Below are positions 53,100-64,000 of a stretch of 64,000 nt of DNA, in pieces. The notes beneath the pieces were generated by a model. That model saw nothing but the letters and a program-made list of their open reading frames with translations, was not told the DNA's origin and did not search any database. Positions within the stretch are counted from its first letter, which is position 1. The number at the start of each line of letters is the position of its first letter. Location of the stretch: NCBI GenBank assembly GCA_024704765.1, contig JAKMXF010000354.1, positions 667,690 to 731,689 on the forward strand, read 5' to 3'. Made by a program: the position numbers and the translations under genes. The stretch is from Oopsacas minuta. Lineage: Eukaryota > Animalia > Porifera.

Positions 53100-54965
53100 A
53101 TGACAGCTCCAATACTTTCATACTATTATGATTTGATGTTACCAAAAGCATCTGGCACAGTAATGAAGGCTAAATGCAAATATTGTGGTACTATAATTTC
53201 TGGAAGACTAAACACATCTTCTAACTTCATCACTCACACGAAGGTATGTAAATTTTCTTTAGATAGTTTTCAGTTATTTATTTTATTACTTTTTTTATAG
53301 AGGAAACACAGAGAGATATATCAAACTCTATTTATGGCACAAAAAGTTCGTCCTGCAGAATCTAGACCCACCATTAAAGTGTCTACTCAGGTTCTTGATT
53401 CACAACCTGTATATGTACAACAAACTGATACTTTACTTAAACTCATAGCTGCTGACCTATTACCTATCTCTATTGTAGATAGTATACAATTCCATCAATT
53501 TGTGACTACCTTAAATCCTCACTACAAACTACCTACTAGAGACCAAATTAACACTAAACTATTACCAGAACTCGCCGCATCTATACAAACACTCATAAGG
53601 CTTAATCTTACAAAAGCTCATAGTGTGTGTCTTAGCTTTAGCGTAGCTAGCCAAGAAGCTAAAACCTTGATAGGAATTACAGCACATTATATAATAGACT
53701 GGAGATTATACTCAATGGTTCTATCTTATACAAGACTAGAGTGTATGTGTAATGAGAGTATTCTCAGACAGGAGTATGAACAGGTAGTAGCTGGTTATGA
53801 AATAGCTCATAAAGTGATTAGCGTTGTTGTATATAGTTCTCTCAATTCACTAGCTCCTTATCTAACGTCTATACCAGGATTCTCAACAGAAGAAAATGAT
53901 AATTATATTATTTTAAGAGTGGAACCACTCGTAAAAGATTCTAAACCGTTACCAGTTATATCGTTTAATTTCCTACCAAGAAGCAGTCCTTGTTTTGTAC
54001 ACAGCCTCCATCTGATTGTGAGAGATACTCTAAACGAGTTAAGTGAGCCTCTGAGGAATGCTATACACGATATTTCTAGCACTATCCAGTACTTAGAGTC
54101 TTTAGGACACAAAATAGTTAAAAACGAAGATAAACCAAATTCTACCAAATGGATTTCACAGCTAGACACGATACGTACTCTATTGTACTTGTCTGAAGAA
54201 GAATTTAGTAAATTAGAGATATCTCACTTCTCTAAAGCTGAGAGAGAAATGCTCCTTGAATTATGTGATATTCTTCATCCTATTGAGCATGCCTTGAGGT
54301 TACTCCAACAGCATGCGAATGTTTCCCCTGGATTTATCATACCGGTTTCTCGAGGAATCAAACACAAACTTGAGCAGATTACACCTGTGCATAACGATAA
54401 TGTGCTTGTTACTGTAAAGAAATTAGTCCAAGAGAGATTAACTCGTTACGAGCAAGACGATTCTTACATCACAGCATCAGTATTAGACCCCAGATTCAAG
54501 TTGAGATGGAGTAATCAGGATGAACAATGTAAAATTAAATCCATTTTCCTAAACAAAGTTTCTATCTTACTATCTTGTTACGCAACTAATCATGATGATA
54601 CCAACTCACAATTGACAAAATCTCAAAAAACTGAAGATGACCTTTTCAGCTTTATGACTCCCACTAGTAGTAATAATGGTACACAGCTAACTACCTTAGA
54701 AGCAGAAACAGAGGTTATTCAGTTTTTATCACAGCCTTGCTTAGACATGGAAGCTGATCCCTTTATGTACTGGAAGACACAGCAAGCCAATTTCCCACTC
54801 TTGGCTGAGATGGCTTTTAGCTACATGGCTATGCCTACTTCTTCACCAGATGAAATTGTCCTAAACGATCTCCTCAAATCTGATCTTTCTTCCCTCAGTT
54901 ATGAAACTTTTCAGATGTTAATGATTGTTAAATTTAATCCTAACTTACAAATAAGAGCTCTTTAA
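53100..54965 (+). CDS. BED zinc-finger hAT-transposase-derived protein (ZBED-like), probably domesticated
   Basis: Exon 53100-53243 joined to 53301-54965 completes the BED finger (CKYC...FITHTKRKH). Also DLLPISIVD..QF, GITAHYIIDW, CFVHSLHL, ASVLDPRFK, and the hATC dimerisation motif DPFMYWK...FPLLAEMA. Confidence 0.85.
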
Positions 54966-55256
54966 CGAATAAATGAAATGACTTGTGGTATAACTTTATA
55001 TTGTTGTTCTTGGATAATTATTTTATCTGTACACGGCCCTTTATCTTATACGTAATTCACTGAATGAATTTTTATTATACTATTTCAGTCAGGGACGGGT
55101 CTTATTATGAACCCCCTATTAGTGCTTGATACAAAATCTATGGGAATGGTTTTATTTGGGCCACTGGTTTGGTTCATAATAAGCTCCCATGACTATATAA
55201 GGATTTAAAAGTGTTTCCCTTCATTTACAAATACTCTTAGTTTCGTCTTCTCTCCA

Positions 55257-55478
55257 ATGCCAATTCTCCCTGGACAAGCTGCTACCTCTAGCACACAGAT
55301 GGACGAGGAAAGTGCTGCAGATTTTAACCAAATGATGGAATATGAAGAATCTGGGATTAGTGCTTCATCTGAGCTAACTCAAACTGATAAAATAATTCAT
55401 TTGGATTTTTATAATCGTTTTGGAGATCTCTGTGATGATGACTTAGATTTAGGAGTAACTACAACCAAAGCTAAGTAA
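55257..55478 (+). CDS. COPS9: COP9 signalosome subunit 9 (CSNAP/MYEOV2)-like small acidic protein
   Basis: C-terminal DKIIHLDFYNRFGDLCDDD resembles the COPS9 motif (KAVHADFFNDFEDLFDDD). Confidence 0.65.
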   Translation: MPILPGQAATSSTQMDEESAADFNQMMEYEESGISASSELTQTDKIIHLDFYNRFGDLCDDDLDLGVTTTKAK

Positions 55479-55608
55479 CTGAGAATGTTCTAAAATTTCT
55501 TGCATGATATTTGAATATTTAGTAATATACGTATTTTCCTTAGTTTTATCTTCCAAATTCTAACAATTTACATTAATACAAAATATAACTAAATATTTAA
55601 TGAATATA

Positions 55609-56193
55609 TTAGTCCCTGTCACCAATCGCTCTCCTGAGTACATCTAATACAACTCTCACTACATCTAAGTTGGGTAGAATATTCTCGTATAATACTATGT
55701 GTTCCTTTTGTTTGTTATCTCCCAATGTCTTCATGACTAACATTAAATAGAATATAACTCTCTGTCTACGGAATCCTTCGTTAACACAGACTATATCAAT
55801 ATTTTCACACAAATACGTTCTGTGGCTCAGTGGCCAGCAAATATACCTGACAACTGTCTGTATAACCTCTCCATGTACTATTACAACTTCTTCAGACAAT
55901 ACAATTGTAGTTAGTACAATAAACATATAAATTACTCCTATAGCAAAGGAGCTGTACCAATAAGTTAGGAAATACATAAGGATAGATAAACTCATTGCTA
56001 TAATGAGATTACACAGTATATACTTGAATACTTGAATCTTGGTGTAGCTGATTCTGATTCTAGTTATTTTATGTTTTAACTTTCCTATCTTACCTTCCAA
56101 TAACTCAGATACCCATTTATCTACCTCCAGATAGTCTCCATTGATATTCTTTCCTTTCTCATGTGTGTATGAGTTATAGCTCTTCGATTTCAT
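55609..56193 (-). CDS. PIGH: GPI-GlcNAc transferase subunit H
   Basis: Two N-terminal TM segments, EEVVIVHG, INEGFRRQRVIFYL, LYENILPNL fit the PIG-H family. Confidence 0.8.
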   Translation of the reverse strand: MKSKSYNSYTHEKGKNINGDYLEVDKWVSELLEGKIGKLKHKITRIRISYTKIQVFKYILCNLIIAMSLSILMYFLTYWYSSFAIGVIYMFIVLTTIVLSEEVVIVHGEVIQTVVRYICWPLSHRTYLCENIDIVCVNEGFRRQRVIFYLMLVMKTLGDNKQKEHIVLYENILPNLDVVRVVLDVLRRAIGDRD

Positions 56194-56444
56194 CACAACT
56201 AATTCTGTAGTATTGAATTTTGATAAGTAACAACCTTATGGTTACAAGACATAGCTTATGAAGTGAATTATGGTTGTTATTTATTGGTTTTCATTTATTT
56301 ATCAACACTTATAAATATTAATACAACTAGACAATGACAACTGAAAAACTATAGCAAACCTCTGAATTCAAGACAATGTTTCAACAATACATACAAACCA
56401 TATCACTACTTATTAGGGGGATATCTTAACCTATTGAATTGATA

Positions 56445-59400
56445 TTATTTGCTAGAATCATTAAAGCTACTGTACAAAGGATTCTTCTCTTCGAAGGGGA
56501 AGTTATCAGGATCAGGGATTGACTTTAGAATAGTAGTAACGTAATGAGGCTCTTTAGATTTAAGTCCTCTTGATTGAGTTAGTTGTTGTGCTACTTCGCT
56601 GGTAAGAGTATCCTGGTCAACATAACTGTACTCAGATGATAGATTACCGTTATTTGTATGTGGTTGTTTCAATCGAGCATTCTCCAGGAATTTGGGTGTG
56701 ATTACGTCATCTGCTTTTGAATACTCATGATTCGGAATATCATCATCTATATCTTCATATTCGTGTACAGGCTCCTGTCCTAAATTGTTGTTAACTGCGG
56801 GGGGAGAAATAGTAGGCGGTACTATTGTAGCATTTCCATCTATTTCCATGTATGTAGCATCATCTAGCACTACTGTATTAGGAAATCTTGATTGTGATTC
56901 TTTCTTTAAAGCTGATGCTTTTTTCGAGTTTATTCGTTCTTGATTTACGTATTCAATTGTCTCGTTTGATTTTTCTTGGTATGCCATTGTTTTAGGGTCT
57001 AAACTTTCATAGAGTGTTCCTATGTTTCCAAGATATTCAGTAGGAACTGTCCTCTCTACCTCAGGATTGGTCTCGAGGTAGTCAGCTTGTGCTGTTCTCT
57101 CTAGAGTGGGGTTGAAATCAAGATATTCACTAGGTGCTGTCCTCTTTACGTCAGGATTGGTCCCAAGATAACCAGTTGGTGCCGTCCTTTCTAATGTAGG
57201 ATTTGAATCAAGATATTCAGAAGCTACTGTCCTCTCTACCTCAAGATTGGTCTCGAGGTAGTCAGCTTGTGCTGTTCTCTCTAGAGTGGGGTTGGAATCA
57301 AGATATTCACTAGGTGCTGTCCTCTTTACGTCAGGATTGGTCCCAAGATAACCAGTTGGTGCCGTCCTTTCTAATGTAGGATTTGAATCAAGATATTCAG
57401 AAGCTACTGTCCTCTCTACCTCAGCATTGGTCTCGAGGTAGTCAGCTTGTGCTGTTCTCTCTAGAGTGGGGTTGGAATCAAGATATTCACTAGGTGCTGT
57501 CCTCTTTACGTCAGGATTGGTCCCAAGATAACCAGTTGGTGCCGTCCTTTCTAATGTAGGATTTGAATCAAGATATTCAGAAGCTACTGTCCTCTCTACC
57601 TCAGCATTGGTCTCGAGGTAGTCAGCTTGTGCTGTTCTCTCTAGTGTGGGGTTGGAATCAAGATATTCACTAGGTGCTGTCCTCTCTACCTCAGGATTTG
57701 TCTCGAGGTATCCAGCTGTTGCTATCCTCTCTAATGTGGGGTTGGTGGAATCAAGATATTCAGTAGGTGCTGTCCTCTTTACATCAGGGTTGTTTTCAAG
57801 GTATCCAGCTGTTGCTGTTCTTTCTAGGTCAGGATTTGTCTCGTAGTAGCCAGCTTGTGCTGTCCTCTCTAAAGTTGGAGTAACATAGTCGGTAGCTTTT
57901 TCCTGAATGGCTGTTTTATCTAAATTTGACTTCAGCTTGACGTCAGAATATGGGTTTATATACACATCCATCTTCTTATAGTTCTTACTTGATCTTGTTT
58001 CTAAGTAATCACTGGAATTCTTAGTATCAGTGACATAAATATCATTTGATTGCATGTATTCACTCCCAGAATCTGTCTTACTTGTCCTGTTGGATACTGA
58101 GCTCTCTCCTTCTATATAATGATTTGGGCTTAGGAAGTTGCTTGAATTATTAGCACCCGTTTTACTAACGACATCATTCGCTAGCATATAATCACTTTCT
58201 GGAATTTCTACAGCTGTTGAATCTGTATTCAGGTTAGAAGAAATGTTTTGATAAACTTCTACCTTTTGAGTTGTACTATCGTTAGCGAGAGAATATTCGT
58301 TAATGTCATCTGATTGTGCTGGTGGAGGTATAAATGAAGCACCTGCGGTATTATCCCTATTAGAAAATTGATCTCCCGTTAGTTGCTTGGATACCCTTAA
58401 ATTCTCATAGTTCAATCCTCCCCTCTTCCCATTAATTGCGTCTCTAACTAATATTTGAACTTGTGTAGTGACTAAATAAGCCATCACTTCATCATCAATT
58501 TCTTCATAATCCGGTACAATACTGCTGTCACGTGATTCACTTCTCATCCCGTGATCTGGATCCCCGTACACGTATAGGCTAGGTTCATTGAGCATTTCTT
58601 GAAGCTGATGGCTGAGGCTCTCAAATGAAATCCTATCGTCTGGTTTATCTATCCAACACTGATTCAGTAAATGATATAGTTTAGAGCTGCAGTTTTTCGG
58701 TTGTTCTAACCGATCTCCCGAAACTAGCAACTCTATAACCTGTTGAGGCTTTACATTGCCATAAGGACGTTTTGCTGAAGTTAGAATTTCCCATACAGTT
58801 ATCCCATAGCTCCAAATATCAGACTTGTGAGAATATTGTTTGTAGAAAATTGATTCTAGCGGCATCCACCTAACTGGAATTTTCCCTCCACTTGATATAT
58901 ACTGATCCTCTCCTACATCAAGAATTCTACTCATTCCAAAATCTGATATCTTAACTAGCTCGTTTGAAGCTACAAGACAGTTCCTTGACGCTAGATCTCT
59001 ATGCACAAGCCGCCTGGACTCCAGATAATTCATACCGCTTGCTATTTGCTGCATGAACGTTAACCTGATTGAGGGAGTTAAATATTTTCCTTCTATCTTG
59101 AGATAGTCCAAAAGAGAGCCACCTTGTACCAACTCATTAATTACCATGAGTTGTCTCGCCATGCAGAGACAATAGAATCTAACTAAGTATTTATTCCGCA
59201 TCTTAGCTAGTAGCACTGCCTCTTTGATAAGCTCCTGCATATCTTCTATCGGTGCATCTTGATTCAACTCCTTTATTGCTACCATTACAGGCTCTCCATC
59301 AACTGGTAGCCACACACCTCTGTACACTATACCGAATGCGCCTTTTCCCAAAACTTCTTTCTTCTCGATTCTAGTCAGATCTGCTATAACTAGTTGTGTC

Positions 59401-62354
59401 ATATCTGCCTCTACTAGGGAGTCCTGACTTCCCATCCTCAAACGGGAGTATTTTGTCAAGTTTGAGCCCAGTGTGTCCATCTCAACTGATCCCACAGAAG
59501 GTCTGAGATCTTTTGGAAGCAATGCATAAGTTGGATTTTCTAATTCTTCTTCTACTTTCAATTTCTTCTTAGAGGCTCTGAAATAGAACACAATGCAAAT
59601 GAAGAAACTTATTACTCCACACACAACTATTGTAATTCCTGCTAGGAATGCACCAATAATTGGAAATTTGTACTCATCCAGAGTTTCTCCCAGAGAACTT
59701 GCGTTGTTAGGTGTACATGTTATTGCGTTCTCGTCCAGTCCGTAATTGGGCGGGCACTCGATCAAACATTTACCATCTAATTTCGCGAAGAGACACTCAG
59801 TACAATCATCTATACTCGTGCAAGCTTTACATAAAGGATCGCAAGCTAAGCACTCCGAGATAGTACTATGTTCCCCATAGAATCCTTCATAGCATTCTCC
59901 TGTACATGTTGCATTGGATACTCCCCACATTGTGAAGAAGTTAGGATCATTACAAGCAGTACAGTTGTATTTTCCTGAACCGTCACAGGTTCCGCATGAA
60001 CCGTGACAAAGAGCGCAATTAGCACTGGAATCTTCGTATTTACCATCACCGCAAGCTTCAACACATTCACCCTCATCATTAAAATTCCGACACTCAGTAC
60101 AATCAAAAGAAGTTGGACCAGTACATCCTATACACTCTTGATTGCATGATTTGCATTCCTTTATCGCTACGTACATATTTGCCTCGCATGTTTCCACACA
60201 AACATCATTATTGATGAAATACTTGCAAGTCAAACAATTCTCAACTCCTGGGCCGCTACATGATTCACATAAGGAGTCACAGGGCCGACATACTTTGATA
60301 TCAGTATCAGAAATGCTTGTGTCTGGAACAACCTCTGATACTGATTCTGTCCGTTCATAGAAACTAATACCAGGACATATGTCACCTGCAATACACCCAA
60401 TTTGATTGTCTTCCTCATCCATTACGATTCTACCACACAAGTTGCATCCTCCATCAGATATCGTTATATTGGGGCCAGTACAACCCATAACACACAAGCT
60501 GTTACATGTTATACAGGTCTTAGCCTCATCTATGAAATTATTGTCGGGACAGGATTCAACACACTCATTATTATATTTGACATATACACATGCATCACAG
60601 GTGAAACTTGTAGCGTCAGTGCATGAATTGAGACATTGTATATTGCAAGGAGAGCAAGTTTTTGTTTCTATGTTTGAAAATACATGCGGTATCCCTGAAC
60701 AGTTTCTTACACATGTACGTTCATGTAAGAAGTTCCTACAGCTGACACAACGTGTTGGTCCTGGTCCCCAGCAGCGGTGTTCTGGTTCACACTCGTAATC
60801 ACATGTACAATTAGGATCATCAGGATAATCAGCTGGGTTACTCAGTGAAATTTCACCCTCAGGTCTGAACACGGTCAGATTAGCGAGATAGCATAAATTG
60901 GAGTTGAATAATACAGATATGATTCCTGCGTTAACTGTTTGCAAAGCTGACAAGTCAATGTATTCAAAGTTATTAAAGCCAATAACCACTGAAGAGGTAC
61001 CCGATAAATAAAATGTATTTCCTTCTATTATCTGTAAATTCCGTAGAAAATCAAACACGTTTATACTAGCAGGAGAGTGTAGTATTGCCAGATAACCTGT
61101 AATCTCTGTAATACTCTCCAAATATCTCAATCCCGTCTCATTGATTCCTTCATATGTAGCGCTGTTTATTACAATTGGCCCATTCACTCTTGTGCAGTTT
61201 TCAAACAAATGTACTGTATCTACTTCTAATGCATTAGAAACACCGTTAATATCAGTTCCATTACATTCTACCGGACAAGCACTTCCACATTTTTGACATT
61301 TCAACACACCACCGTCTACAACTTGAGTATATTCCGCTGGACATCTCAATACACATTCCTCATCAAATTGTATGTAATTTCCTATACACTCTGGTACACA
61401 GAATTTGTCTAACGTGAATTTACCATCTGGATTCAACTCAGCCATGAGTGTTGTGGGGTTTAATACAAACTGTGGTGGACAAGTTTCTACACAAATCTCG
61501 TCATTATACTTATCCCTACAGCCATAGCATTGATCTGCTCCTGGACCGTAACACCCTCCCAAACAGAATTCATGACAACACAACCCCTGGTCTACGTCAT
61601 AACATCCTGAAAGTGGATTGCATAAAGTACAACTCCCTAATGAGTAGGAGGAAGTCAGTATTTGGCAATTGCTCATATTCCAACACGCATCTTCTAAGCA
61701 CTGTTCACACAACGATTCCGTTAATGTTACATTGCATTCGCTCGCTAGATCTAAAATTACAGTATTATCATAGTTCATACTTACTTCTACATCAATTCGA
61801 AATATTATTTCATCCGTCCTTAGAAGTTCTATCCAATTAATTCCGTATAAGTTACAGCCTGTGTTTGGATCTAAGATTTCCTTAGTAATATCAACAGCCC
61901 CTGTCACATCTCTGTTCTCTAAGATTCCTACTGTGTGTGCCGCTATGTATGTGAGTTGTGGGAATAGGATCTGGTCTATTGTGCAATTTGTGAAGAAAAT
62001 GGCATACTTTTGAGTCCCGAAGCTTGGAATAAATGGGTCTCTTCCTTCTATTATTCTTAATCGTGGTAGTATTAGCTCAGGGGTTTTTACGTTAGAGAAA
62101 AGTATGTGTCCAGTGACTTCTTCTAATTGGTTGAGGAATGAAAAGTTGGAATTCTGGAGTTCTGGAGAAGAACTATCCAAGAATATCGATAAAGTTCCAA
62201 GAATCCGTCGACAACCGCAATATTCGTCATCAAAATAGGACAATGGCTGTATATTCACTAGTAGCTTACTTATGCATAGTTCTCGTACAGGACATTGTCC
62301 TAATGTAAAAGTAATTAAACCTGAAAAAAGCAATATTTTTACGAAGATTAACAT
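56445..62354 (-). CDS. EGFR/ErbB-family receptor tyrosine kinase (1969 aa)
   Basis: Signal peptide; two L-domains (LEEVTGHIL...LPRLRIIEG; ITEITGYL...LRNLQIIEG); many furin-like Cys repeats; TM; kinase LGKGAFGIVYRG, VAIK, HRDLASRN, KISDFG, KIPVRWMPLES, SDIWSYG; long Tyr-rich tail; intronless. Confidence 0.92.
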   Translation of the reverse strand: MLIFVKILLFSGLITFTLGQCPVRELCISKLLVNIQPLSYFDDEYCGCRRILGTLSIFLDSSSPELQNSNFSFLNQLEEVTGHILFSNVKTPELILPRLRIIEGRDPFIPSFGTQKYAIFFTNCTIDQILFPQLTYIAAHTVGILENRDVTGAVDITKEILDPNTGCNLYGINWIELLRTDEIIFRIDVEVSMNYDNTVILDLASECNVTLTESLCEQCLEDACWNMSNCQILTSSYSLGSCTLCNPLSGCYDVDQGLCCHEFCLGGCYGPGADQCYGCRDKYNDEICVETCPPQFVLNPTTLMAELNPDGKFTLDKFCVPECIGNYIQFDEECVLRCPAEYTQVVDGGVLKCQKCGSACPVECNGTDINGVSNALEVDTVHLFENCTRVNGPIVINSATYEGINETGLRYLESITEITGYLAILHSPASINVFDFLRNLQIIEGNTFYLSGTSSVVIGFNNFEYIDLSALQTVNAGIISVLFNSNLCYLANLTVFRPEGEISLSNPADYPDDPNCTCDYECEPEHRCWGPGPTRCVSCRNFLHERTCVRNCSGIPHVFSNIETKTCSPCNIQCLNSCTDATSFTCDACVYVKYNNECVESCPDNNFIDEAKTCITCNSLCVMGCTGPNITISDGGCNLCGRIVMDEEDNQIGCIAGDICPGISFYERTESVSEVVPDTSISDTDIKVCRPCDSLCESCSGPGVENCLTCKYFINNDVCVETCEANMYVAIKECKSCNQECIGCTGPTSFDCTECRNFNDEGECVEACGDGKYEDSSANCALCHGSCGTCDGSGKYNCTACNDPNFFTMWGVSNATCTGECYEGFYGEHSTISECLACDPLCKACTSIDDCTECLFAKLDGKCLIECPPNYGLDENAITCTPNNASSLGETLDEYKFPIIGAFLAGITIVVCGVISFFICIVFYFRASKKKLKVEEELENPTYALLPKDLRPSVGSVEMDTLGSNLTKYSRLRMGSQDSLVEADMTQLVIADLTRIEKKEVLGKGAFGIVYRGVWLPVDGEPVMVAIKELNQDAPIEDMQELIKEAVLLAKMRNKYLVRFYCLCMARQLMVINELVQGGSLLDYLKIEGKYLTPSIRLTFMQQIASGMNYLESRRLVHRDLASRNCLVASNELVKISDFGMSRILDVGEDQYISSGGKIPVRWMPLESIFYKQYSHKSDIWSYGITVWEILTSAKRPYGNVKPQQVIELLVSGDRLEQPKNCSSKLYHLLNQCWIDKPDDRISFESLSHQLQEMLNEPSLYVYGDPDHGMRSESRDSSIVPDYEEIDDEVMAYLVTTQVQILVRDAINGKRGGLNYENLRVSKQLTGDQFSNRDNTAGASFIPPPAQSDDINEYSLANDSTTQKVEVYQNISSNLNTDSTAVEIPESDYMLANDVVSKTGANNSSNFLSPNHYIEGESSVSNRTSKTDSGSEYMQSNDIYVTDTKNSSDYLETRSSKNYKKMDVYINPYSDVKLKSNLDKTAIQEKATDYVTPTLERTAQAGYYETNPDLERTATAGYLENNPDVKRTAPTEYLDSTNPTLERIATAGYLETNPEVERTAPSEYLDSNPTLERTAQADYLETNAEVERTVASEYLDSNPTLERTAPTGYLGTNPDVKRTAPSEYLDSNPTLERTAQADYLETNAEVERTVASEYLDSNPTLERTAPTGYLGTNPDVKRTAPSEYLDSNPTLERTAQADYLETNLEVERTVASEYLDSNPTLERTAPTGYLGTNPDVKRTAPSEYLDFNPTLERTAQADYLETNPEVERTVPTEYLGNIGTLYESLDPKTMAYQEKSNETIEYVNQERINSKKASALKKESQSRFPNTVVLDDATYMEIDGNATIVPPTISPPAVNNNLGQEPVHEYEDIDDDIPNHEYSKADDVITPKFLENARLKQPHTNNGNLSSEYSYVDQDTLTSEVAQQLTQSRGLKSKEPHYVTTILKSIPDPDNFPFEEKNPLYSSFNDSSK
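57031..57895 (-). repeat. Coding tandem array of 45-bp units in 180-bp higher-order repeats (RTK tail)
   Basis: Lines starting 57121, 57301 and 57481 are identical; about 20 units of roughly 15 aa, each with a Tyr. Confidence 0.95.
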
Positions 62355-62723
62355 TTTTCACGTCAATAACTTTTCACCAAATATTCTTCTTTATACTCTT
62401 TGCATTTCTATCACGGCATAATAATGTAGGCATCTTTTCAATATAGGGCATACTCAATTGCTGAAACATAATACATTAACATAGGTCATACCGAGAATGC
62501 TTTACTCGTCCTTACTTGTATATGATTTGGATATTATATTCCAGTTGAATATGCAATTTCTTTGAAATTGAGCTCATGTATCCTTTGTCACTAAATTAGT
62601 GGAAATCTTTACAACTCATTATATTTCTCCAAATACCTCAAATCACACATATTAAATCATTTATCAATTTATAGTATTAGCTAGAATCTTTGGAATATTA
62701 TTAATTAAAGTAGTCTTTCAGTT

Positions 62724-63449
62724 ATGGCTAATACTGTAATAAACACAGCACCAGAAATGGTGCTGTTACAAATACGTTGTCCTTCAACAGGGCAAATTAC
62801 AGAAAAGAGATTTGACAACTCGATATCTGTTGGGGAATTGAAAGGGAAGTTAGAACTAATAACAGGCATGTTAGGTTCTACGATGGATCTGGGACTATAC
62901 TCCAAAACTAATGCATACGTTTGTGGTTTGATTGATAACATGAAGCCTCTCTCTGCTTACAATGTAGCGGAGGATATGGTAGTTGAAGTAACCAGTAGTG
63001 ATCCTAAAAGTAAAGTCATAGATTTCAGTGATCCTAACTTTCAGCGCTACGAACTCAACGAAGACGACTACGATAAGCGACCTGGGACGGTAAGGGCTTT
63101 CCTAAAACAGAACCAGCTGGGTACATTCAGTGGTAAAGCTGCACCAAAGGCGAACGAAGATGACGGTAAGGAAGAAGCGGAAAAATTGTCACTCAAGTCA
63201 CGCTGTTTAGTTACTATGCCTAATCAATCTGGCAAAAAGGGTGTGATCATATATATCGGTAAAACTGATTTCAAAGAAGGTTATTGGGTTGGGGTTCGGT
63301 ATGATGAGCCTGTAGGGAAAAACGATGGGAGTGTAAATGGCAAAAGGTACTTTGAATGTCAAGCGAAACACGGAGGATTTGTTAAGCCTAAGTATGTAAC
63401 CATGGGGGACTATCCTGAAGACACATATTCAGATGATGATGAAATGTGA
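62724..63449 (+). CDS. TBCB: Tubulin-folding cofactor B (UBL + CAP-Gly)
   Basis: EKRFD...KGKLELITG, YELNEDDYDKRPGTVRAFLK, CAP-Gly GYWVGVRYDEPVGKNDGSVNGKRYFEC. Confidence 0.95.
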   Translation: MANTVINTAPEMVLLQIRCPSTGQITEKRFDNSISVGELKGKLELITGMLGSTMDLGLYSKTNAYVCGLIDNMKPLSAYNVAEDMVVEVTSSDPKSKVIDFSDPNFQRYELNEDDYDKRPGTVRAFLKQNQLGTFSGKAAPKANEDDGKEEAEKLSLKSRCLVTMPNQSGKKGVIIYIGKTDFKEGYWVGVRYDEPVGKNDGSVNGKRYFECQAKHGGFVKPKYVTMGDYPEDTYSDDDEM

Positions 63450-64000
63450 TAGTCTCATCAGCCTATGCTTACCAGCAACTTTAATTTCTCCTCTCGAGAG
63501 GCTATAAAACTTGATAATAGAAGCTAGATTCATATATTCAATTGTGTACCCAATGTCTAAAGTTACACTAAATACACGTAATTAGTATAGCAATTTGTAT
63601 GCTCTTATTCTTGTATATCAGTCCAAGGTAGTGCTATTTGTTATTTGTTCAGTTTTTTTCATTTAATAATAATAATTGTTCTTAACATAATACTCAAGTA
63701 TTTATTGTTTCTAATATCTTACAACAAAATACTGTTAACAACCCTTAGGGAAAATCAAAATCTGTTCGAGATAGCGTATGTTCGAGTTAACGGATGTTGA
63801 GTGTATTTACATAATTATTCACGTCCTACCCTCCATTTGATTGATTATTCATAAAACATACCAAATTAGTACTTATAAATGCTTGAAATAGAAATTTTGT
63901 CTTTTTGTGATTGTAATGTTGTCAATTCTATCAGTAAACAGACTTATCATTGTTTCACGTATTTTCTGCAATCGAATGGGTGTTGATATTTCCCTATATG

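Follow-up and report, generated by a model that had tools for sequence, protein, structure and literature searches.

The window analyzed here, a stretch of 64,000 nucleotides from the glass sponge Oopsacas minuta (assembly GCA_024704765.1, contig JAKMXF010000354.1, positions 667,690 to 731,689), encodes on its reverse strand a single-exon receptor tyrosine kinase of the EGFR/ErbB type, whose cytoplasmic tail carries a tandem array of near-identical units, each centered on a tyrosine (Table 1). The reading frame is uninterrupted over the entire receptor, and the Pfam matches of the ectodomain (PF01030 twice, PF00757 once and PF14843 three times) are all above cut-off. The catalytic motifs of the kinase are intact (G-loop at residues 1003-1008, VAIK at 1025-1028, HRDLASRN at 1118-1125, DFG at 1138-1140 and PVRW at 1160-1163), and the best 60 matches of the kinase among PDB sequences are all EGFR or ErbB4 (E ~1e-72). 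In its ectodomain layout, its single-pass type I topology (as read by eye) and its possession of an ErbB-closest kinase with intact catalytic residues, the protein has the features of an EGFR/ErbB receptor, in agreement with the first-pass annotation of this DNA, which had described the host of the array as an EGFR-like kinase. The protein is present in NCBI and UniRef (P0001), and sponge EGFR orthologues as well as EGF-type ligands have already been reported (PMC4914847). The O. minuta genome also encodes a second EGFR-type paralogue of 1415 aa (L043:5157-9404, G000 contig C298), which has the same ectodomain architecture and a tail of ~200 aa with scattered acidic-Tyr sites and no tandem array. 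An Rfam scan of positions 55000-64000 returned no match.

Table 1. Features of the receptor gene in the window (aa, residues of the encoded protein)
Feature	Position	Strand	Basis
Single-exon open reading frame (ORF), EGFR/ErbB-type receptor tyrosine kinase, 1969 aa including the stop codon	56445..62354	-	ORF listing and Pfam
Putative signal peptide, aa 1-19	62298..62354	-	By-eye reading: hydrophobic N-terminus, LG then QCP
Ectodomain: L1, Furin-like, L2, three cysteine-rich GF_recep_IV-type stretches	59655..62297	-	Pfam
Transmembrane helix, aa 901-925, followed by basic RASKKK stop-transfer	59580..59654	-	By-eye reading
Tyrosine kinase domain, aa 997-1251	58602..59366	-	Pfam PK_Tyr_Ser-Thr, E 3.6e-84
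C-terminal tail, 692 aa, 44 tyrosines, predicted disordered	56448..58523	-	Tyrosine count; AlphaFold2
YENL site, Y1316, Grb2-type YxN, invariant in six orthologues	58398..58409	-	Tail alignment and census
Tandem tyrosine array, aa 1485-1783, with 20 tyrosines in a 15-aa register	57006..57902	-	Translation and unit alignment
Near-perfect higher-order repeat within the array, 4.4 blocks of 180 nt (four units each)	57029..57827	-	Tandem Repeats Finder and unit distance matrix
EYVNQ site, Y1802, Grb2-type YxN, conserved as EY[VE]NQ	56940..56954	-	Tail alignment and census
NPLY site, Y1961, PTB-type NPxY near the C-terminus, conserved as NP[LI]Y	56472..56483	-	Tail alignment and census

The tyrosines of the array run in register from Y1490 to Y1774 (n = 20). 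Residues 1499-1769 comprise 19 clean units, all 15 aa long except for one of 16, and one degenerate unit flanks each end; the unit core reads P-[ST]-[EGD]-Y-L-[DEG]-[ST]-N-P-x-[LV]-[EK]-R, and T, E, P, A and N are abundant in its sequence. Tandem Repeats Finder resolves the higher-order part into 4.4 copies with a period of 180 (93 % matches, score 1319) and also into 8.8 copies with a period of 90. Units of the same type are 0-2 nucleotides apart (of 45) across blocks, and the four unit types inside one block are 10-17 nucleotides apart. The array is thus real: the interval in which the first-pass annotation had placed it (57031-57895) falls within the limits found here, and its description of about 20 units of about 15 aa, organized as near-perfect 180-bp four-unit blocks, proved accurate. 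AlphaFold2, run on an alignment of six tails, returned a mean pLDDT of 34 for the tail and of ~30 for the array, which showed no secondary structure, and a folded repeat domain was dropped as a candidate for want of any predicted structure. As weak evidence, this model fits an array region that is intrinsically disordered. When the array was used as a query against its own genome, two weak extra matches were obtained, both unrelated: L002 contains nine stops, and L003 (1500-2010, G000 contig C321) is a Tyr-free 14-aa tandem repeat, Q-Q-D-E-P-T-I-E-K-S-L-P-N-T, lying in a long open frame and matched by composition only.

A word search with the tail recovered five further full-length proteins (P0002-P0006) from ENA assemblies, and a profile search run exhaustively against 1.84 billion representatives yielded one more, the last exon of a more distant sixth orthologue (P0012, locus L050); in that profile search, no other protein family with such a tail was found. 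The window and the six loci (L008-L012 and L050) have a common gene order: receptor tyrosine phosphatase, tubulin cofactor B-like, EGFR, PIG-H-like, MYEOV2, hAT-dimerisation and Peptidase_C78. Because this order matches that of the window, the six are true orthologues, presumably from other glass sponges, and their contig names suggest that the assemblies were built with long-read assemblers. Comparison of orthologues, which the first-pass annotation had proposed as a check, revealed an in-frame array in all seven syntenic loci (window included), as well as on two extra haplotype contigs. There are 18 units in the window when a strict motif is applied, 19 in L008, 16 in L009, 14 in L010, 19 in L011, 14 in L012 and 20 in L050.

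Positional conservation was counted in the first six species (window and L008-L012), which together contribute 100 units, and L050 was read separately. Tyr occupies position 0 in all 100 units and is flanked by Leu at +1 in 99 and by Glu or Gly at -1 in 95; further out, Ser or Thr is found at +3 in 98 units, Asn at +4 in 93, Pro at +5 in 96 and Pro at -3 in 76. The distance from one Tyr to the next is 15 aa with a single exception, and with L050 included, all 120 units from seven species have the Tyr. At the conserved Y, L, N and P, codons vary synonymously both within and between species, for example TAT versus TAC for Tyr, AAT versus AAC for Asn, four different codons for Leu and three for Pro. 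In the kinase domain, the difference among the three main lineages at four-fold degenerate sites amounts to 0.49-0.67, which is near saturation: an unconstrained array sequence would therefore have been lost, and the array has been kept by selection.

The most distant orthologue, L050, delimits the part of the unit that is retained. Its kinase is 76-79 % identical to the others and its units are 15 or 16 aa long, with the second half wholly replaced (N+4 and x-hydrophobic-E-R are gone) and P-S-E-Y-L-E-S-x-P retained in essentially all 20. The core that survives the deepest split is thus P-[ST]-[EG]-Y-L-[DE]-[ST]-x-P, and because L050 retains just positions -3 to +5, these positions around the tyrosine constitute the functional element. 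A short GT-AG intron (L050:9930-10010) lies right after the array in this locus, whereas the O. minuta gene is single-exon; we read L050 as two separate exons, unjoined, and the ENA gene caller had split the gene into products of 1736 aa and 203 aa.

Every species has its own near-perfect higher-order repeat, with a period of 90, 135 or 180 nt and matches of up to 99 %. In all six of the closer species, units with Glu at -1 and usually Ser at +3 (E-type) alternate with units that have Gly at -1 and Thr at +3 (G-type). The nucleotide identity of units of the same type is 69-89 % across species, as compared to 60-71 % for E-type versus G-type units within a species; because unit types are closer across species than within them, the two-unit superunit predates these species. 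The recent expansion proposed in the first-pass annotation therefore holds for the last block duplications, but not for the array itself or for its E/G alternation, both of which are older than lineages that are 0.49-0.67 apart at four-fold sites. These patterns point to an old sequence under continuous turnover, in which blocks of two or four units are gained by duplication and lost again, so that the array is homogenized.

Copy number differs even between alleles. The sample ERZ25072730 contains two co-linear contigs of equal coverage and neighboring numbering that are 96.6-97.7 % identical in nucleotide sequence, and these are most simply explained as two haplotypes. The two EGFR alleles, which are 98 % identical, carry 19 and 26 units, with all length differences consisting of whole units; in a second haplotype pair, from ERZ25072740, both alleles have 14 units. 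The range across loci and alleles is 14-26 units, such that the variability in copy number anticipated from the window alone is borne out both between species and between co-assembled haplotypes (19 vs 26), and array copy number changes fast.

The tyrosines lie in a context that is familiar from other members of the family. Across 87 metazoan ErbB tails, phosphosites converge on a central EYL motif, which is an efficient substrate of EGFR and is disfavored by Src and Abl (Cantor et al., PMC6077704). The center of the sponge unit is the same EYL that appears in the published ErbB tail logo, and the tail tyrosines outside the array are mostly preceded by an acidic residue. A motif census of the array found no match in its units to YxN, YxxM, NPxY, YxxP or Cbl motifs, and the first-pass annotation had already remarked that most units match none of the first three. 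The usual Grb2- and Shc-type motifs are represented by YENL, EYVNQ and NPLY, which occur in one copy each and all outside the array.

Candidate readers of the units were sought among the proteins encoded by the genome, where at least 65 SH2 and ~10 PTB matches were obtained, including two Grb2-like SH3-SH2-SH3 adaptors, a Shc-like PID+SH2 protein, Cbl, PLCgamma, Abl and a p85-like tandem-SH2 protein. Grb2 was rejected because the units have no Asn at +2; both Grb2-like adaptors retain the EF-loop Trp, which we take to accompany YxN binding. A supposed third Grb2-like adaptor, L016, turned out to be an Abl exon. The pY-L-[DE] start of the unit recalls the PLCgamma sites of FGFR and Trk receptors, but PLCgamma was set aside because +3 is Ser/Thr and not hydrophobic, and it is left as a weak candidate. 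Among the SH2 proteins there is also a 657-aa open frame (L046:1505-3475, G000 contig C151) in which a caspase domain occurs together with three SH2 domains and DUF7145; this domain combination is unusual and might connect phosphotyrosine signaling to a protease.

The array is a Tyr-centered, selectively conserved repeated motif, as would be expected of a multivalent phosphotyrosine docking platform. We consider it probable, judging from these sequence comparisons, that its units are self-substrate sites for the adjacent kinase and that they most likely form a disordered multivalent docking platform, for which an SH2/PTB-type protein is the candidate reader. The regularly spaced tyrosine platform advanced in the first-pass annotation stands insofar as the array is coding, conserved, Tyr-centered and variable in copy number and has the EYL core of ErbB tails (PMC6077704); its phosphorylation, docking by a single reader and any dosage effect are inferred. 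Ligand-driven dimerization would activate the intact kinase, which would then act, in cis or in trans, on the EYL tyrosines of the tail and phosphorylate them, yielding up to ~20 equivalent pY-L-[DE]-[ST]-x-P sites per chain. These sites could recruit many copies of one putative SH2-/PTB-type reader or bind multi-SH2 proteins with high avidity, and the single YxN and NPxY sites would serve Grb2- and Shc-type adaptors in parallel. Unequal crossing-over of two- or four-unit blocks would keep the copies within a species near-identical and shift copy number by whole units, with selection maintaining the core motif and roughly 14-26 units.

Several observations weigh against the docking platform. 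We know of no SH2 or PTB specificity that fits the residues from pY+1 to +5 of the unit. Conservation in the six species reaches +9 (E/R), exceeding the typical SH2 footprint, and about half of the units in these species carry Gly instead of Glu at -1, which is not optimal for an EGFR substrate. The AlphaFold2 disorder result comes from a shallow alignment of six sequences. RNA support for the receptor gene was sought and none was found, and the 90 % cluster of P0001 consists of a single genomic member. Finally, the O. minuta genome (365 scaffolds, ~61 Mb, GC 36 %) is a PacBio+Illumina SPAdes hybrid assembly (PMC10280926), and the unit count taken from it could be mis-sized.

A stronger version of the docking platform, which we regard as possible but would hold only tentatively, has the glass-sponge EGFR acting as its own high-valency scaffold: a lineage-specific SH2/PTB reader of undescribed specificity would bind the ~20 (14-26) units of each chain, clustering of receptor and adaptor or condensates would result, and heritable copy-number alleles (19 vs 26) would set the signaling gain.

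One of the other explanations is that the array works independently of phosphorylation, either as a set of linear motifs, read as Y-L-x-[ST]-N-P-x-hydrophobic by a Dab/Numb-like PTB domain or by an endocytic or cytoskeletal adaptor, or as a semi-rigid proline-rich spacer. Conservation over the whole of -3 to +9 in six species would suit such a role, as would the N-P-x-[LVA] of the unit, which in our estimation resembles the turn of NPx[YF] PTB ligands, and unrelated 15-aa Y-x-x-x-N-P-E-V-x-R repeats in arthropod Helitron-linked and bacterial HNH proteins show that the pattern can arise without tyrosine signaling. However, L050 loses N+4 and the x-hydrophobic-E-R half and keeps P-S-E-Y-L-E-S-x-P in 20 units, and because only the Tyr-centered core is ancestral, this explanation, including its PTB-type NPx-hydrophobic ligand, is weakened. 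Moreover, the one invariant residue is Tyr (120/120), set in the ErbB autophosphorylation consensus beside an ErbB kinase with intact catalytic motifs. We regard a phosphorylation-independent array as unlikely.

Alternatively, the array might be phosphorylated and act mainly in cis, as a high-capacity substrate sink, a pseudo-substrate or a timer that delays or grades receptor output through multisite ultrasensitivity or kinase occupancy. The best-conserved part of the unit, P-S-E-Y-L at -3 to +1, is the side that a kinase recognizes, the units are without a known reader motif, and the ordinary YxN and NPxY docking sites stand separately in the same tail, all of which would favor this reading. 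A pure sink, however, needs none of the residues at +2, +3 and +5 ([DE], [ST] and P), and these are as conserved over the deepest split as those from -1 to -3, making it unlikely that the array acts chiefly in this manner.

It is very improbable that the array arose through misassembly, or that it is a low-complexity insert that has no function and expands neutrally. Near-perfect 180-nt blocks are of the type that short-read k-mer assemblers mis-size, and the O. minuta assembly is a SPAdes hybrid; but arrays of the same register and core lie on nine independent contigs from six other assemblies, always in frame, with synonymous variation at conserved residues and in lineages near neutral saturation, so that this explanation is already largely refuted.

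Equally little weight can be given to capture from, or homology to, a basic 15-aa repeat family, K-R-Y-x-E-S-N-P-E-V-H-R-A-A-V, associated with arthropod Helitrons and with HNH endonucleases: the profile search gave E-values of 1e-22 to 1e-14 and the two share a period of 15 along with Y, [DE]+2, [ST]+3, N+4, P+5, V/L+7 and R+9, but tandem repeats inflate E-values because one matching unit is scored over and over, the sponge units are acidic and rich in proline where the similar repeats are basic, the taxa (moths, a spider and bacteria) are unrelated, and homology was rejected because the common half, N-P-E-V-x-R, is the part that L050 identifies as non-ancestral in sponges. Nor were repeats of this type found in sponge mobile elements beside EGFR loci in the own-genome array search. 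The proteins that share the period and Y-x-[DE]-[ST]-N-P-E-V-x-R with the sponge units (P0007, P0015, P0017, P0021 and P0029) have lysine/arginine-rich repeats in nuclear or nuclease contexts, unlike the sponge units, and we read the likeness as convergence. In the moth and spider proteins (P0007, P0015, P0017, P0021, P0022 and P0034), the basic 15-aa repeat is linked to PIF1-helicase or OTU-like (Helitron-type) domains, and a similar basic repeat precedes the HNH domain of the bacterial protein P0029; no Pfam family spans the repeat.

The orthologous loci offered two further observations. In P0004 (L010:6001-13848) and P0005 (L011:6001-14133), the first ~755 residues of the ectodomain (L, Furin-like, L and GF_recep_IV) are duplicated in frame; the duplicated modules are 97.3 % and 98.9 % identical within P0004 and P0005, respectively, and 66-67 % identical between the two species, and the duplication is not present in sister species. 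It could reflect independent recent events with the same borders, gene conversion or an assembly error in which haplotypes were joined. In addition, a gene of 543 aa with a hAT dimerization domain (window 53334-54965, forward strand) is situated between MYEOV2 and Peptidase_C78 in all seven syntenic loci; this constancy of position suggests that it is a domesticated transposase and not a mobile copy.

The sponge tail is in several respects an ordinary ErbB tail. Like EGFR/ErbB1-4, Drosophila Egfr and C. elegans LET-23, the receptor has a tail, here predicted to be disordered, after an ErbB-type kinase, with EYL tyrosines (PMC6077704), and it also resembles ErbB tails in its single YxN and NPxY sites (YENL, EYVNQ and NPLY). 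Known ErbB tails, however, carry a handful of distinct, unrepeated sites, in contrast to the ~20 near-identical, homogenized sites at strict 15-aa spacing in the sponge, where pY+1 to +5 also differs from the canonical ErbB reader motifs.

Closer in arrangement is the RTKB2 tail of Monosiga brevicollis, in which six disordered RM2 modules of ~80 aa are substrates of the receptor's own kinase and, once phosphorylated, bind a Src SH2 domain (Schultheiss et al., 2013, PMC3584944); RM2 has been reported only in Monosiga RTKB proteins (PMC3584944). Both RM2 and the sponge array are repeated, Tyr-bearing modules, disordered in RM2 and predicted to be so in the sponge, C-terminal to a receptor tyrosine kinase domain, but RTKB2 is a choanoflagellate-specific receptor with six modules of ~80 aa, whereas the sponge array has 14-26 units of 15 aa and belongs to a bona fide EGFR orthologue. 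Because its unit is 15 aa long as opposed to ~80, and because RM2 is known only from Monosiga RTKB, the sponge array is an analogue of RM2 and not a member. RTKB2 RM2 is the nearest precedent, and the principle of repeated, self-phosphorylated tail modules is thus already known.

Many copies of one SH2-binding motif, as proposed for the sponge array, occur in the disordered regions of other signaling proteins, such as the substrate domain of p130Cas (15 YxxP sites), IRS/Gab/LAT and nephrin, where they confer avidity and can drive clustering. Those are separate adaptors with diverged, irregular sites, whereas the sponge sites are homogenized, copy-variable and located in the receptor itself. 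The EPIYA segments of Helicobacter pylori CagA are repeatable Tyr-phosphorylation motifs in a disordered tail with copy-number polymorphism, an arrangement like that predicted for the sponge array; CagA, however, is a bacterial mimic phosphorylated by host Src/Abl, and its motif and origin are unrelated to those of the sponge array. A literature search for the unit strings retrieved no paper, and the receptor is not among the subjects of the O. minuta genome paper (PMC10280926). A homogenized, ~20-fold array of 15-aa EYL units in a true EGFR orthologue, conserved in syntenic orthologues from presumed glass sponges and polymorphic in copy number, thus appears to be undescribed.

ErbB tails, with their few distinct docking tyrosines, are a textbook case, and the effects of the number and spacing of docking sites on signaling are usually studied with engineered constructs. 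In what appear to be glass sponges, evolution has built, and has kept over deep divergence, an EGFR tail that repeats the family's preferred phosphorylation motif ~20 times at fixed spacing and that exists in natural copy-number alleles. If the tyrosines are phosphorylated, the ErbB EYL self-substrate rule would also apply in sponges, a lineage close to the base of the animal tree; the alleles would provide a natural series for how valency controls receptor output, and the unit would serve as a defined-sequence bait for a new SH2/PTB specificity in an early-branching animal. Should the receptor also prove to be its own high-valency scaffold, it would represent a natural experiment in multivalency within one of the earliest-branching animal lineages.

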